Origin: Magallana gigas
Taxonomy: Eukaryota
Assembly (NCBI RefSeq): GCF_963853765.1
Contig: NC_088858.1
Coordinates: 6,572,001 to 6,636,000, forward strand
Direction of reading: 5' to 3'
Length of the DNA stretch: 64,000 nt
Of this stretch, positions 42,868-51,800 are shown piece by piece. The position numbers and the translations under genes are program-made. The first letter of the stretch is position 1; each line of letters opens with the position of its first letter. The notes under the pieces are model-generated. The model ran no database searches and was not told where the DNA came from. It saw only the letters and a program-made list of their open reading frames with translations.

Positions 42868-45800
42868 GTTGACGTATCACTTGCTTGTTTTAAGATGTTT
42901 ATCACACAACTTCTTTGAATCTAAATGACATGATCAAGAACGTGATATTTTGGTGATTTTTATTCCATGCTGAAATACCCATTCATAGTCATTCATTTAC
43001 TTATCCATTATACTGAATTGTGTATGTAAGTAAAACACTTGAATGCTTTAGATTGTGAGTTTTAAAGTAAAAGAAAAATCCGACATGAAAGACTCTCTTT
43101 ATTCCGGGATGGTATATCCCCCGATGTGTCTTCTTTAATAAAAAAAAAAATAAAGAATAATGCGGATCTAGACAATTTTCTCAGGGGGGTCCAAGAGGAA
43201 GGAAAAGGGGGGGGGGGTGTTTTGATGCCTAATTATGGTAATTTTATGTTAATCTAATAATGTAGAATGTTCCGCCCCCTCCCCTCTAATTTAAGGACAG
43301 ATAAATCTATGTGTAAGAGAGAGGTTCTGTGTATGCCAGTTTTATACCGATAGCTATAATTTATATCATAAGTTATGGGTTTCACCATGGGTTAAACATT
43401 TCTACCGTATAATAAATGGATATATGATACGGTCTATAATTAATCTGTCAGTTTCTATTAAAATTCATTTTAGCACGCTTTCATGCTTGTATTATATTCA
43501 GCGTTAATTGAGATTTAAAAGCAAATTGATGTATGCATTAGGAAAAAAAAAATTTTTTGGCAAAAGTGTAGCTCAAAATATGATTCTAAATGTGATCCAA
43601 AATTTTTCAATGATGCCATTCCTTTAAATGGTTATCTAAATTATGCTGGAACCTTAAATTTTGTCTTCAATTTGATCTTTAATCTCTAATGACTTCTGAA
43701 TACTTCGTTTGCAGGCACGTATCACCAATTTCTAATTGGAGTGGGCGGAATGTTTCCTGCGAGAAAAAACGGGTCACCCCCCCTTCCCAATCCCCAAAGA
43801 TACGTACCTGGTTTGTAACTTACTACATTCATTGATACTTGGATACATAACCAAGTAGTCAACAGTATTTGGCTAATAAAATCTAAGTTTATATTAAACA
43901 ACAACTATCAGATCAGTTTTTTAAAACAGGGAATCAAAATGCAACAATTCCTTTGATGTGTGATATATAAACCTAGTATTTGCTTTTTCCGACTTTAAAT
44001 TTGAGACGTCAATTTGACGTGCACTGCAGCAAAAGCATAATCGATTATAAATTAATAAACTATAAAGTGTCAAATACCGAAGCACTAAAACAATATCTGA
44101 CTATTGCATTTTTAATAAGAAGAGTACTCATCTTGTTTTTTAAGTTTTTTAAGTTTTTAAAGTACACGTGATTTATTAAGTGTCGTTTATATATTTTACA
44201 ATGTACCATACACAAATTTAGACAGTCGTAGAAGTTGTCGTATAATATATTCTGTCGCCAATACGTTTCATAAATACACGTATACGTGAATACCATGTAT
44301 GTTATACCAAGAATCGAACACCAATCCAGCCAACTAGATAATGGACTTGGTCATATGACAAATTACGAGCGCAACTTATGTCAATTAGAATTTTATATTT
44401 CCTGCGTATTTGTCACAGGCACTTGGGGCATGGATATCCCCTCGAACAACAACAGCTTTATCCGTTTGAAAAAAAAAATACGTTTTAATATGCATAATAC
44501 CTTATCGATGATTTAATTAATCGTCTTTTTAAGCTTGTTTTAAAAATAGCGGTTTTCGACTGACGTTTAAAAATGTCAGCCGAAAGTGCGATTTTTAAAA
44601 GTTAACTAAATTACAAAAGAATATTTTTGCTTTTTATACGTGTATGATCCGGTAAAGCATCAAATCAAATTTAACTCAACATGAAATTTAGTTTCCGATT
44701 CAATCCATTAGACAATTGTATTATATGATATTCCATTGTTTTGCGTACCGTTTTAAACGACTCCTTTTTTGTTTCATTGAATAGCAAGCTTTAGTTTGTT
44801 GTAATATTCTGTGCACCATTGATGTACTAAAGCGCACCGATCCGCTGATACAGATTATATCCTATAATTTGAGGCACCGTCCGATATTCATATAATTTTT
44901 CTAAGATCAGAGGTAATACATTGATACCTGTCTACTCATTTCAAGCTAAAGTGCAAACATTCAAACGTTTAAATGATGAAATGAAATCGAAAAAAACCAG
45001 AAAAAATAATGATATATTCATGATTAAATATCATATCATATACATGTAAACGGGGGAAAATTGTTTATCACATTAAATCCGCGTGGTTTCTTCGCGTGAA
45101 AATCATGTTCGAACGTTAGCCCCAATGTATGTTTCGATGGTTTTTTTTATTAAGGATAAATACATGAATTAATGATAATTCATTTATCTAAATATTTCAA
45201 CCATAAGCGCATCATATTTTACTAAACGCGAATTTAAAAAATAATAGCGACCTTTTTTCTTTCTTTCAATGTCATTGTTATTTGAGATTATGTATTCATG
45301 GAATGTCATTATTATAGATTTAAAGATTTTAAAATCTAAAATTACTTTCGACTAATCGAAGTCCTTGCCGTTTTTGTGGACTTTACGGCCAATCTGTGCA
45401 GTCAAGTGTTTGACGATGCTCCCACACATTAAACAGCGCTCTCATTCACACATGGGTCCCATTGATTGACCCTCGAAAGCAAACAGCAGTAACCGGGCTC
45501 AAACCAGAGGTATAAACAGTGATAATCCTAAATAAATAATTATATGGCCTGTCTGTCTATAACACTGTCAGTGCACCTGTAACACCACACCCCCCAATAG
45601 AAATAGCACGGAAAACAGAAGCCAATTCTTTCAGAAACTAAAGAGAACTAAACCTAATTGAGATGTGACAATGTGCATGTCCATCATGTGATGATATTAT
45701 TAATTTATTATAATACAATATATCACAATCAGTTATCAAAATAATGATATACACATACATGTTATTTTGCCTGCATCTTTAATCTTATTTCCGCTGTTTT

Positions 45801-46323
45801 AAAAAACTCGCTGTTCGGCCTTGAGCAGACATTGTTTAGTAAAAATACCTTCTGATTTTAAACACAGTCAAGTACCTGAAGTTAAAACATTACCTTTTGT
45901 TGGTAACTGTGACAAAAAATTCTGATAATTTTCTACCTATATAAAAAAAAAATATTCTAAATGCCAAAATCGGATGATTCAGAAGTCCTGAAATTTGCAT
46001 CAGCGAAGTGATATGTCGAATTGGGGGTGTTTTTTGTTAGCGCAACTTATACCCCGGGTCCTCTTTTCTCTCTGGTGCCCCCACACGTTTGTTTAAATTA
46101 CCTTCATCTATCAATATGAGTGGGGAAACTATAGAAAGAACGTAGTGTGCGAAAGACACTGAATCATGCAGCGACTGAAAAAAAACCTAATATACTAGTC
46201 TACTGTTTGGGGAATAACTTTAATGCACATTCAGAGCTATTATTCTTGAATTCTTATAGACATGGTCTTGGGCGTAAGAATACAGCACGTTAAATACACA
46301 GGAATAACGTACAAGAGCAGTCA

Positions 46324-46331
46324 TGACGTCA
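46324..46331. promoter_or_regulatory. Perfect CRE palindrome TGACGTCA about 2.2 kb upstream of the peptide gene
   Basis: Motif match only. A TATA-like TATAAATA also lies about 140 nt upstream of the peptide ATG. Confidence 0.25.
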
Positions 46332-48527
46332 CCAACACTTCAGAATCATGGGCGGTTTACTCAGAGAATTGCCATAAAGTAACCATTAAGATCTTTAATT
46401 TTCTATGTACTGTATAATATGCTTTGAAATCCCCAAGAGAGCGTTAATGTAATTCAAAGAATAGTCTAGAATCAATTTCTTGCAAAATTCTTGATCCATT
46501 AATGAATTTAATCAGACGTTTTGGGATAGCAATGTTTTAATTACCAGATAGTTGTTAAGGATAGACCATGAAACAGACAGTTATTTAAATATAGACAACA
46601 AAATGCTCTAAGGAATTTTCCCTTGTGAATCTAGAATTCAACATATTTGATATTTATGTTAGTTTATACGACAATTGACAATATATATACCAGAAACATA
46701 AATGATGCAATCTGTATTAATTTACATACATGTATATATATACACCCTGTTATTATCCTATCACATACTGCAGAAATTCTGTTATTATTACACAGCTATT
46801 GACAAAACCAAATCATAAGGTATGCATTTCTTAGATTGTTCAAAACAGCCTTCAAACGTAAATTTAGTTTTGCGTGAATTATTTCGTGATGGCTACAGAG
46901 GCTTTCCAAGAAGTTCTAGTAACTTCCAGGTACGAAAGAATTGGCCGTTCATTTCATGCAAATTACCGATCACATCAAAAATGGGATTCTTTATTATCGT
47001 TGACCTATAAGACCTATGCGACTTATGAGTTGACTAAAATGTTTATACCCACATGTACTAAAAAAAAAATCCACTGATGTGGGTTTGCTGCATTTTTTTT
47101 TCTACCTTCAACCATGCATGAACCACTGAAGAAAGTATTTATTGTTTATATTTAAATGAACAAAGAAGAAAAGAAGCCAATCCGATATTTCAATCTTCAT
47201 TTTAAAAGTTTGGTGTTTTTTTTACATATGTAGCTAAAAAATATGTTTCATTTATTCTAATCCCGATTAAATAGGGATGGGAGATTCCAGCGATATAGGT
47301 TTATGGGTCAGTTCCGGTGGTTTATGACTCGATAAATGTAAGATTTGTTCTTTAACAATCAATATTGACATACTTTTATGTTGATTAATTACTTTGGGAA
47401 AAAAAGAAGAATTCGATCTACATACAGTTAAAAAATGAGGCATCTTTCAATACAGTGTGCTACCCCCCCCCCCCCCCCCCACCAGATATCTTGTAAAGTA
47501 CTAAATATTCTTCAACTGACAGAAGATCACCCCAGTAATTCATCTCAATCAGCAGACTACAGGAGTATTCGACGTTTAGCATTGCATCAAGCCAAGTGGG
47601 AAAAATTGTACCCGCCTATTTCCGATAAGCGGATTATAAATGTCTCGGAGTCCCCAACTCAAAGTCAGCATTTCTGAAATCTCACTGCCAGGCAAGGGTA
47701 AGAGCTTACCATTAATGACTATCATTATTGTTACTCGTATGGATTTATTTATTTTTTTGGATAATTTTATTTGATTTTAAAAACAATTATTTTGAAATTT
47801 ATAAAGAAATCCAAATAATCGATACCGAATTTTGTGAATTTTAGCAACCACATTCGAACTTATAATTATTTTCATACATTTCCTTAGAGTAATAACAGTT
47901 AGATTAAGAACGAATAAGGTTTTAATTTTTTTGGGGGGGGTGTTAAATAGTGAAGTTTTGCCCTTTATTGATTTCATTACTTAAAAAAATGTTAATCTTC
48001 CAGAATTCTCCTTTACATGCATGGTATAGTTCATTAAGATACCAATTACGAAGCTTCTTTTGGTGGGTGGATATTGTCATTGAGTTTTAATAATTATATA
48101 TAACAGCCGCAATTACATGAATGGATACCCCCTATCGATTGCTATCACGTAAGGAATTGCGAAATCTAGCGAAATCAGCGTCACCGGAACGCGAGCCCGC
48201 GATTTTCATTTACACAAGGATTAAGTATCGAATGGCATAAAGTGTTAAATTTTTGTTATCTGTTTATCAAATACGACCCTCCCTTCTAAGTTATCTGGGG
48301 AATTTCAAGGATGATGGAGGGACTGTGTACCCCCTGACCGTCTGTGTTAGAAAATAGAACACCACTAAATACAGTTACCCAGATATAAATAGATATTACT
48401 ACAGACATATGATATGATAAACGTCTAAAGTCAAGAATTCATTGAACCATGCCATTTTCGATCATTTACAAATATTAAGAAGGAAACCTCTGTTTCTCAT
48501 TTTTTTGGGCATTTGTTCTTTAATTAG

Positions 48528-48812
48528 ATGAAGTTATCAATGGTCCAGACGATGGCAGCCCTGTCTCTTGTTCTGCTTCTGGTGTCAACCACGTGGGCCT
48601 ACCCTTCACAGATCCTAGGAAACAGACTCAAACGTTCAAGTTTCTCACTGGACGCCTTCCAAATCACAAAGTGTTCCATGAGCGAAGCGGTGAACACTAT
48701 TTGCTACGTCTGCGGAAGGACTTACGACAGTATGGAAATTTACAGTCAGTGTTGTGCCGGAAATGACGCAAACTTAGTAGCTTTCTGCGAAGGAGTGTTC
48801 AACACAAGATAG
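48528..48812 (+). CDS. Secreted cysteine-rich prepropeptide (neuropeptide/hormone-like; CHH/ITP-like core, family unassigned), 94 aa
   Basis: A hydrophobic signal peptide (MKLSMVQTMAALSLVLLLVSTTWA) is followed by a short propeptide ending RLKR and a 58-aa mature region with 6 Cys (C-x9-C-x2-C-x12-CC-x10-C). The ATG directly follows a strong acceptor (tttgttctttaattag), implying an upstream UTR exon. AATAAA lies at 49056-49061. Confidence 0.85.
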   Translation: MKLSMVQTMAALSLVLLLVSTTWAYPSQILGNRLKRSSFSLDAFQITKCSMSEAVNTICYVCGRTYDSMEIYSQCCAGNDANLVAFCEGVFNTR

Positions 48813-51800
48813 TGAACAGCAAGACAGTTTATTCTTCAAAATCTCGAAAGATCTCATCTTCCAAATTGAAAACACTTCAAATGAATCTCTAGGACCAATT
48901 TACGTGCATCCTGAGTAATGAGGTTGTTCCCCAGTTTTACTTGCGATTGTGTGCTGCGTTTTATGAACTTATTTTTGAATTATTATTGAGGATTTGTATC
49001 TTTATTAAAGATACTTGCAATCTTGCATATATATTTTTTATATATTTTGTTACACAATAAACATTTTTTGCAAATCTCTAGTTAAAGTTGTTATATTTTG
49101 TATTTTGAATACCATCTTGAACACTATAACAAATATTTTGTTTCTTTTGTTAATATCTTGAACACTATAACATAAATGTATCTTCATATAGATACTGCAA
49201 CAAACTAATTCAGAAATATTTCATCAAAACATACAACTTCAATATTTGATTGGGAAAACCTACGATATTTCATTCAAGGCGATATCACGGACAAGATATC
49301 GTACGATATAAGTCGTTAATCTTTATAGGGTAATAAAATATTCAGAAATGCACAAGATTTAATCAAAACATTTTATTTCAAATCATATAAGGTAGGTATA
49401 TCAAAATGGTATCTAGTTGAAATAATGCTGATTAATCGTTTGAAATCAATTTGGTCATAAGCTCTCTCCTGAAACGTTGCCGCATTGGTTTCGGCTTCAT
49501 AGTGATCTTGTATAAATTATAAATAGTGTCCAAGAGAGTTTATATATCCGTTACGCCTTTAGTTCCACTGTTATCTATGCTATCTATGGTTCCATATGTC
49601 TCAATCCTGTCTACCATGGAACAGATGCTGCAAACAATAGTGGTAAACCAGAGACTTTTGGACGATAACGATTTTCGACCACAGAGTCGCTGCCCAGTGG
49701 TTTTCCAGCTGTCTCTTCAACCACTTAGAATTCTGTTCATCTATTTTAGGACCAATTGAAGTCTTCTCGAGTCTCCTAAACATCTTGCTATGGTTCATTC
49801 TTAGCATTAGTAATGATATTTAAGTAAAAGAGGGATTTATTTTATTTCTTTAAATAAACTTACTGTCGGCAATCAAAACGGAATCAAATGCTTCCCCACG
49901 AACAAGTAAATACTACTTATATTATTACACGAACTACAAATTTTAGTATAAAATCAAAGATCCAAAAATATATCTAATGTAGACCAGAAAAAGATCATGT
50001 GAAAGATAATAAGGAAATGAGTCGTTCTCAGTGTCAGATACACATCTATAATTGTTCTAAGGAAGTCCCAGGAAGAAGCTAAGACCAAACAGTGAGGACG
50101 TCATCAAAGTATAAGTATTGTCTAACCGTGAGTTTCATGTTTCAAGTTTCAAGTTTTATGCGTTGCAAAATGTGTCTTATCGAATGACCAACAGAAGGTA
50201 TTAATGAAACTGTAAAGTACGGACATGTTTGCTGAAACACCCTATATTAAATGAAGGGGAACTTGTAAGTAACAGTAATTTTTTTCCCAACCCCATAGAA
50301 TGAAAACTCGAGATAACATGCTGACGTGACCGTTAAAAGTGTTTTTTGGCGTTTTGCAATCTTGATAAATCATTACCTCAGACACACGTAGTTTTTGCAA
50401 AGAGTTACTTTCAATGTATATACTAAGTGTTCTGATTTTAGATGTCATTGTAAAAATATATTATAAAGAATTGTGTTCGTCAATATTTTTTTGGGCAAAG
50501 CGTGAAAGATATTGACGTAATAACCGGTTTGTCGCTTTCTGCAATTAAAAAAAAAACATTTTTTCTAAGGTTTGAAACAATTCTACTCATCTTGCTTTTA
50601 AAATATCATTGTCATATTTAGATATTTTAGGAAACTTGACGAATCAACGTGTGTTTTCTTATAAAGTGGACTTTTGATTCATGACTCATGAACACGAGCT
50701 GAAGGTCATCTTATTTCCATACACCGAATTTGAACTCGTTTGTAAACGTCTTTCTCAGACAAAATAAATCCATTACTATCCCCATGTTTACAATACCCCA
50801 CAATAAAACATTCTATTTTTGTTTTACAGATAGAGCTGTATTCATCGCAAAGTCATTATGCAACATCATGACCATCCTGCTATCATGCCTATTTATATGA
50901 GGTTTCTTAAAGAGAATGATACGGGGTGCACATAATTATATTGGTTTATATTGTTTAACTTTATGCATAATTATGATTCTGCAATTTTCAACATTTTATC
51001 AAAATTATATAGAAAAAGAACCTCATTAAAAAAATCCAACAAATTCTTTTAGGTCAATATAATACTTGTATAGAGTAAAACAATGGCTGTATTCATGGCT
51101 TGGACGTTTGGCAATATAACCTTGTGTTCTGCAGACCTACTGCATTTGTGTTATTTTCTAGTACCCTATTAAACGTGGGGTATAAATATAGCTATTACAA
51201 GGTCTAATCATATACGACTAAAATAGTCCAGCTCGATAAGCCGTGTCCTGATAGTGATGATGTTGTTGAGGGGTATTGCGAAGATGTGTCCTGAATGTGG
51301 GTGGTGGCCACCTCGACACATGTGTCTCTTTACGGTGACTTATTACATACTGTTATAGCATATTGATACGATGTTACCACGCTTAACACCTTTCATTAAT
51401 TTGATGAATTAAAGTTACCAACGCAAGTATATTCAAGTAGGAGAACCCAGAAACGCAGTACGAAATATACTAATATTGACTCGTTATACCTCGGTCAGCT
51501 TTTCACTTATCACAAACGCGTAGGCTCAACTCACAAAATCATTGTATTTTGTTTGAAAAAAATTCATGTATCACCTATTTCCGTTTTGTATTTCACGGTT
51601 TGTGCATTTTAACAACGCCAAAAACAAGCAAAATAAATTTTGAAAAATAAAATTCTATTTTTACTATCTCCATGGTCATAAAACTAAAATATAAAACCTT
51701 CAAATAATGTTTATTTGTTTATTGCCATAACAATCCAAAAAAGTTAACCAGATGTCTCTCACGTGATTGTCATGCATGGCCAGGCTTCAGCCAAAGTAAC

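Follow-up and report, generated by a model that had tools for sequence, protein, structure and literature searches.

In arthropods, hormones of the crustacean hyperglycaemic hormone (CHH) and ion transport peptide (ITP) type regulate moulting and reproduction as well as metabolism and the balance of water and ions, and CHH has the disulfide pairing 1-5, 2-4, 3-6. Insect eclosion hormone (EH) is a six-cysteine helical hormone with the spacing C-x3-C-x2-C-x12-C-x3-C-x10-C. To our knowledge, hormones of the CHH/ITP type were thought to be restricted to ecdysozoans until a four-cysteine family was reported from spiralians in 2023. Here, we analysed a stretch of 64,000 nucleotides from the oyster Magallana gigas (assembly GCF_963853765.1, contig NC_088858.1, positions 6,572,001 to 6,636,000 of the forward strand), hereafter called the window, in which a first-pass annotation made from the letters alone had marked a small open reading frame (ORF) for a secreted six-cysteine peptide. 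Our main finding is that this ORF belongs to an expressed, constrained gene whose peptide probably represents a new branch, with six cysteines, within the CHH/ITP-like superfamily.

The scoloptoxin-03 family of centipedes comprises venom components that are reported to act on Kv or Nav channels and that have the framework C-x9-C-x2-C-x12-CC-x8-C with the pairing 1-5, 2-4, 3-6 (PMC7232367). The disulfides of k-SLPTX3-Ssm1a were determined experimentally as C9-C36, C19-C35 and C22-C45, and those of Ssm6a and SSD609 are C5-C32, C15-C31 and C18-C41 (PMC7232367). An origin of these toxins from CHH/ITP hormones has been put forward (Undheim et al. 2015, cited in PMC7560641 and PMC13311285). The spiralian family described by Koch et al. 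2023, the CHH DREPs, occurs in molluscs and annelids and is characterized by four cysteines (CxxC-x11-C-x11/12-C) in two disulfides and by a phase-2 intron located where the mature peptide begins; members are listed for Mizuhopecten (OWF53087.1) and Dreissena (KAH3886336.1) (PMC10501145). These DREPs supersede the restriction of CHH-superfamily peptides to ecdysozoans, which the first-pass annotation had taken as the classical state of knowledge (PMC10501145).

The ORF lies at 48528..48812 (+) of the window, stop codon included, and encodes 94 amino acids. Its position and the cysteine spacing of its mature part, C-x9-C-x2-C-x12-CC-x10-C in a regular-expression check, are exactly those given at first pass. 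The precursor layout proposed there, with a signal peptide, a propeptide, RLKR and a mature peptide, is also borne out by the sequence, and the same layout recurs across the family described below. At the N-terminus, a hydrophobic core (AALSLVLLLVSTT) is followed by a small-residue -3/-1 site, T-W-A/YP, where cleavage is predicted after Ala24; [YF]P after the predicted cleavage site is found in most family members. The K-R directly before S-S-F is invariant between the oyster species, and KR, RR or KSKR stands at this place in other members. The mature oyster peptide is acidic, with a computed isoelectric point of 4.3 and a monoisotopic mass of 6355.72 Da with three disulfides, or 6199.62 Da if the C-terminal Arg is removed.

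For the search of relatives, we used a two-sequence oyster profile as the query of an exhaustive HMMER search of 1.84 billion representative proteins. At E<=0.001, 16 proteins were retrieved. Small precursors with a length of 90-162 amino acids make up ten of these, namely the second oyster orthologue and nine relatives, all with the same motif. Besides oysters, the named sources of the family include Pinctada fucata, Mytilus galloprovincialis, Mizuhopecten yessoensis and Dreissena polymorpha, and all named members are annotated as "uncharacterized" or "hypothetical". The cluster mates from Magallana gigas (UniProt A0A8W8ICI8) and Crassostrea angulata (XP_052700559.1, LOC128177756) are annotated "uncharacterized" too. 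Outside bivalves, this search, with the limited reach of a two-sequence profile, returned no named member except from Perkinsus olseni, and word-based homologue searches yielded nothing beyond it. The spacings C1-x9-C2, C2-x2-C3 and C3-x12-C4, the adjacent C4C5 and a Tyr after C2 are invariant across the family; G-R after C3 and an aromatic residue before C6 are nearly so, and between C5 and C6 there are 9 to 13 residues. In most members, a dibasic site precedes C1 at a distance of 8-16 residues. A C-terminal G-R-R or G-K-R in the two scallop-type sequences points to amidation of these members. The family, which is spread across bivalves, has no Pfam model and no name that we could find, and the oyster gene is annotated but uncharacterised. 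In Dreissena polymorpha, at least four near-identical annotated copies (DPMN_094340 to DPMN_094357) lie on one chromosome-sized contig, suggesting a local tandem expansion, unlike the single copy of the oyster.

Comparisons with known families at the sequence level gave few matches. In Pfam, the window protein hit no family, and no match to Crust_neurohorm appeared even at E<=10; six-frame genome searches with the Pfam Eclosion and Crust_neurohorm models did not find the oyster locus. One of eleven family members matched Crust_neurohorm (PF01147) at E 0.062, as the best family listed. Since neither the window protein nor any family member reached the gathering score of this model, the CHH/ITP likeness noted at first pass does not amount to membership of Crust_neurohorm by sequence. 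When the family profile was compared with all PDB sequences by HMMER, k-Ssm1a (2M35) came out on top at E 0.066-0.092, with five cysteines in register. The adjacent CC, which had been called atypical, and the shorter C1-C2 loop are no oddity, and they reproduce exactly the framework of the centipede scoloptoxin-03 toxins.

An AlphaFold2 model of the oyster peptide was built on a 13-sequence alignment of the mature region. It has four helices, with a mean pLDDT of 76.8 and four of the five models in agreement, and this predicted all-helical structure is in line with the helical fold that had been expected. Foldseek against the PDB returned 2M35 as the sole match (TM 0.66/0.72, root-mean-square deviation 1.5 A, 26% identity). 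An exhaustive VIA structure alignment of the model to 48,161 PDB chains placed 2M35, k-Ssm1a, at rank 1 (score 6.5, 51/52 residues aligned) and 2MZ4, Ssm6a, at rank 2 (6.1, 46/46 residues aligned), with moult-inhibiting hormone (MIH; 1J0T) at rank 3 (3.9) and Ta1a (6URP) at rank 5 (3.5). Foldseek against the Swiss-Prot part of AFDB gave 21 rows, of which ranks 1-8 are scoloptoxin-03 and the remaining 13 are ITP-like, CHH, GIH, MIH, MOIH or latrodectins. In the AFDB clusters and the ESM Atlas, the neighbours were the family member from Pinctada, clusters of arthropod CHH-type proteins and further arthropod proteins, unnamed and about 100 amino acids long. Every one of these fold scores is modest for a helical protein of 58 residues, as the tools' own warnings state, so it is the exclusivity of the match lists, rather than any single score, that carries weight for the link to the CHH/HAND superfamily. 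With lists filled by scoloptoxin-03, CHH, ITP-like peptides and MIH, the structural tie to CHH, ITP and MIH suggested by the first-pass annotation holds.

The nearest unnamed look-alikes are arthropod proteins of about 100-116 amino acids without a Pfam family, among them A0A1A9ZV68 (30% identity over 44 residues), A0A1I8MVE2 and A0A6J1TEY6. The look-alike clusters of the ESM Atlas, with 113 and 75 members, are also from arthropods and include a 102-residue "hypothetical protein". These arthropod proteins may be endogenous relatives of scoloptoxin-03.

The gene had originally been described as a possible relative of CHH- or EH-type neurohormones, and only the CHH half of this description is supported by the fold lists. 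A divergent EH would account for the C-x2-C-x12-C...C-x10-C spacing common to both, and an EH cluster does occur in the ESM Atlas at a score of 0.79. However, this score lies within noise by the tool's own note, and the Pfam Eclosion model misses the locus both in the six-frame genome search and in the protein scan. None of the 21 Swiss-Prot fold matches is an EH, and the C1-C2 and C4-C5 spacings differ. In addition, the published oyster EH (Cragi-EH) is a different precursor with two EH ligands (PMC8398477). We therefore regard the EH assignment as largely refuted and highly improbable.

Another candidate identity, an oyster copy of the spiralian CHH DREP family, would set four cysteines and a phase-2 intron against the six cysteines and intronless coding sequence found here. 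Both gene types exist side by side in Mizuhopecten, in Dreissena and in the oyster genome. Six-cysteine members are present in Mizuhopecten (XP_021354924.1) and Dreissena (KAH3851853.1), and the oyster genome has two tandem CHH-DREP-like exons on chromosome piece C5, at C5:8542351-8542500 (ETCEACGEMFGSSVTYKC) and C5:8553262-8553396 (EICEACGEMYGSATAHFC), with the six-cysteine gene on a different chromosome, C6. An hhalign comparison of the six-cysteine family with the oyster DREP covered 18 columns, the C-x-x-C-G block, at a probability of 3.8%. The distinct genes in the same genomes and this 18-column alignment indicate separate families in the same superfamily neighbourhood. The family motif strings were also not found in the supplements of Koch et al. 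2023, whose alignment tables are set in 10-residue blocks, so that this is no proof. As to identity the DREP assignment is refuted and retains next to no probability, and a deeper paralogy is possible. The two C5 exons themselves appear to be the four-cysteine oyster copies of the CHH-like family reported from spiralians.

RNA runs labelled 'oyster metagenome' contain the stretch, in agreement with its oyster origin. To follow transcription, we compared four RNA runs, metatranscriptomes labelled oyster or by coded organism names, with positions 44000-49900 of the window, 4.5 kb of flanks serving as a silent-stretch control. Contigs from three independent studies span 48332-49074, 48399-49061 and 48373-48957, with k-mer depths of 35, 30 and 77, respectively. 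In the same comparison the depth over the flanks was about 0, which leaves a discrete transcribed stretch of about 0.7 kb. Transcription over the ORF, a point the first-pass annotation had left for checking, was thus observed in all three studies. In the few poly(A) raw reads, the first mate is on the minus strand, which fits RNA from the + strand, as in most stranded libraries.

The 564-Mb assembly contains a single copy of the gene, and a profile search for oyster paralogues returned only noise; a candidate paralogue at C9:32588908 was rejected, being riddled with stops. The second oyster species has a 90-residue orthologue that is 68% identical overall. Between the two species, the 39-residue core NTICYVCGRTYDSMEIYSQCCAGNDANL[V/M]AFCEGVFNTR shows 1.5 non-synonymous versus 17.5 synonymous differences. 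The proportion of non-synonymous differences (pN) in the core is 0.016, compared with 0.79 (saturated) for synonymous differences (pS) and with a pN of 0.36 in the signal and propeptide. A constrained core behind a dispensable leader is typical of bioactive peptides such as hormones. The locus is a real, expressed and constrained gene, far beyond a chance ORF, and its product is very probably a secreted, processed peptide under strong constraint.

Taking these results together, we propose that the family forms a six-cysteine branch, new and distinct from the four-cysteine CHH DREPs, within the CHH/ITP-like ('HAND-fold') superfamily, with a hormone as its most likely role, and we assign this reading a probability of about 0.7. 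A true relationship of the oyster peptide to the CHH/HAND superfamily, combined with a signalling role, is likewise probable. Several findings weigh against the proposal. No sequence search was significant against bona fide CHH, ITP or MIH, the closest structural relatives are ion-channel toxins rather than hormones, the phase-2 intron on which Koch et al. relied as a sign of CHH ancestry is missing from the oyster coding sequence, and the most complete name list of oyster visceral-ganglion neuropeptides has no matching entry.

Apart from the missing intron, the same findings would be expected of a convergent, lineage-specific helical disulfide-rich peptide, for example one that serves in defence or as an antimicrobial, as a pheromone released into the water or as an endogenous modulator of ion channels. 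The best structural matches are Kv/Nav-active toxins, and for a peptide of rare neurons one would expect a k-mer depth somewhat below the 30-77 seen here. Nevertheless, defence peptides and toxins usually evolve fast and channel toxins are typically basic, whereas the oyster peptide is acidic, comes from a single-copy gene and has a core pN that is the opposite of defence-peptide or toxin evolution. Five identically spaced cysteines together with the same fold would also be hard to reach by convergence, which we consider unlikely.

In the processing that we propose, the signal peptidase would cut after Ala24 and a furin/PC-type convertase after RLKR, releasing the acidic 58-residue peptide, whose C-terminal Arg may be trimmed. 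According to the model, the peptide would fold into a compact four-helix bundle, and by analogy with scoloptoxin-03 its disulfides would be C13-C40, C23-C39 and C26-C51 (1-5, 2-4, 3-6). Most probably it would serve as an endocrine or neuroendocrine signal that is received at the cell surface. Judging from ITP and EH, the receptor might be a guanylyl cyclase of the membrane or alternatively a G-protein-coupled receptor (GPCR); for ITP, receptors have been reported as guanylyl cyclase or GPCR (PMC13311285).

The features of the gene are collected in Table 1. The putative promoter block, about 0.9 kb upstream of the ORF, shows no difference from the window in two contigs of another oyster species, and the splice donor AGG/GTAAGAG after 47697 and the AGCATTTCTG block are conserved between two oyster species. 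In the Crassostrea angulata RefSeq model XP_052700559.1, the first 13 residues map to 47640-47678 and are joined directly to the ORF. We read exon 1 as non-coding because the upstream ATG at 47640 is missing in another oyster species, is out of frame here and overlaps the TATA box. Given this ATG, the 20-residue N-terminal extension of XP_052700559.1 is probably an annotation artefact. On the acceptor side, the ORF's ATG comes after a pyrimidine tract and 'ttaattag', and the sister-taxon RefSeq model uses the same join.

The splice joint was sought in RNA contigs (Logan) and none was seen, the contigs running collinear for 130-196 nt into the putative intron. We attach no weight to the missing joint, since the assembler would clip so short a first exon (30 nt) as a tip, and the oyster gene may also give unspliced or internally initiated transcripts. 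From these data we infer a two-exon gene with the whole coding sequence in exon 2. Under either reading of exon 1, the coding sequence is uninterrupted and the sole intron lies in the 5' untranslated region (UTR). The conserved block inside this intron had no match in Rfam. A low-depth RNA contig at 48032-48178 lies over the block and carries a 32-nt unmatched extension.

Table 1 Features of the oyster gene (positions in the window) and of the three tandem homologues in Perkinsus olseni (positions in contig JABANP010000188.1).
Feature	Position	Strand	Basis or remark
Putative core promoter block CCCGCCTATTTCCGATAAG..GATTATAAAT, TATA box TATAAA at 47635-47640	47611..47641	+	Conservation
Exon 1, short, non-coding	47665..47697	+	Start approximate (~30 nt past TATA box); donor at 47697
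5'-UTR intron, ~830 nt, GT...AG	47698..48527	+	Acceptor AG 48526-48527, directly before ATG
Conserved non-coding intronic block, 92 bp	48133..48224	+	blastn, ~80% identical to other oyster species
Signal peptide, residues 1-24 (MKLSMVQTMAALSLVLLLVSTTWA)	48528..48599	+	Predicted from sequence
Propeptide YPSQILGNRLKR, 12 aa, ends RLKR (furin-type R-x-K-R, dibasic convertase site)	48600..48635	+	Sequence
Mature peptide, 58 aa, six Cys at 13, 23, 26, 39, 40, 51	48636..48809	+	Sequence, AlphaFold model, fold matches
Stop codon TAG	48810..48812	+	Sequence
3' UTR, polyadenylation signal AATAAA at 49056-49061	48813..49083	+	Transcript contigs end 49061-49083
P. olseni paralogue	2221-2538		
P. olseni paralogue	5163-5480		
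P. olseni paralogue	10001-10324		

The single named source outside bivalves, Perkinsus olseni, is a notifiable pathogen of clams and abalone. One family member from the HMMER search is annotated from this species, in three assemblies. On the best contig, JABANP010000188.1 (91.6 kb), there is a tandem array of three intronless paralogues, 105-107 amino acids long. All of them have a signal-like N-terminus, eight cysteines, a C-Y-[YF]-C-G core and an adjacent CC, and in two the G-R-x-Y-D-S motif is complete. Another contig, 94-97% identical, is a haplotig of this locus, and further copies occur in other strains. The contig DNA has 51% G+C in every 1-kb bin, compared with 34-35% in oyster DNA, so by composition it is not contaminating DNA from a bivalve. 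For one copy, an AlphaFold model reached a pLDDT of 83, with only one of five models confident, and had the same PDB neighbours as the oyster peptide. In a small tree, the P. olseni sequences form one clade (95/94), whose place among the bivalves the tree leaves unsettled.

A gene transfer from host to parasite with hormone mimicry is a possible explanation of these sequences. In its widest form, the C-x9-C-x2-C-x12-CC framework would not have arisen in centipede venom but would mark an old protostome signalling peptide, conserved as a hormone in bivalves and captured and expanded by P. olseni into a tandem array of secreted eight-cysteine mimics for host manipulation, which would attest to its importance for the host; we regard this scenario as doubtful. 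If the genes are confirmed as the parasite's own, P. olseni would be an unusual example among protozoan parasites in having a host-type peptide-hormone gene.

We also looked for an earlier description of the peptide. The full text of about 8.4 million papers, in which coverage is incomplete, gave no match to an 18-residue oyster string or to six decapeptides of the family, and the family strings were not found in the supplements of the oyster visceral-ganglion neuropeptidome, which are likewise incompletely covered. A keyword search of the main text of the scallop neuropeptidome paper, the LOC number of the scallop gene included, showed no match to the family. An identity with clionin was rejected, and no assignment of the oyster peptide to an already named mollusc peptide family was found.

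The existence of a second, fully six-cysteine family in bivalves makes it testable which spiralian family corresponds to arthropod ITP/CHH, and whether the cysteine framework of the centipede "HAND toxins" predates arthropods. It also makes the receptor, guanylyl cyclase or GPCR, testable in molluscs of importance to aquaculture.

When set beside the known systems, EH (PF04736) shares the C-x2-C-x12-C core and C5-x10-C6 with the oyster peptide, and differs in the C1-C2 and C4-C5 spacings. The CHH DREPs resemble it in belonging to the CHH superfamily by fold, in their PDB neighbours, in the C-x-x-C-G motif and in being acidic and conserved. However, they are widespread in molluscs and annelids, whereas the six-cysteine family has so far been found in bivalves and P. 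olseni only. The type I precursors of CHH, ITP and MIH have the same order of signal, propeptide, dibasic site and mature peptide, and their mature peptides share with the oyster peptide six cysteines, a helical fold and the C-x2-C-x12-C core, which every family member has. They differ in having C-x3-C at C4-C5 instead of the adjacent CC and a C1-C2 loop of 15-16 residues instead of 9. At 58 amino acids the oyster peptide is also shorter than CHH and is without the extra terminal helix, as in the HAND toxins.

It is these scoloptoxin-03 'HAND' toxins (2M35 k-SLPTX3-Ssm1a, 2MZ4/2MUN mu-SLPTX-Ssm6a and SSD609) that have the same C-x9-C-x2-C-x12-CC framework, together with six cysteines, a compact all-helical fold and a small secreted precursor, and they are the top matches of the oyster family by both sequence profile and fold. 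The pairwise identity in structural alignments is 17-26%, and the C5-C6 loop has 8 residues in the toxins, compared with 10 in the oyster peptide and 9-13 across the family. Unlike scoloptoxin-03, the oyster peptide is acidic and extremely conserved, comes from a non-venomous bivalve and is preceded by a propeptide with a dibasic cleavage site.

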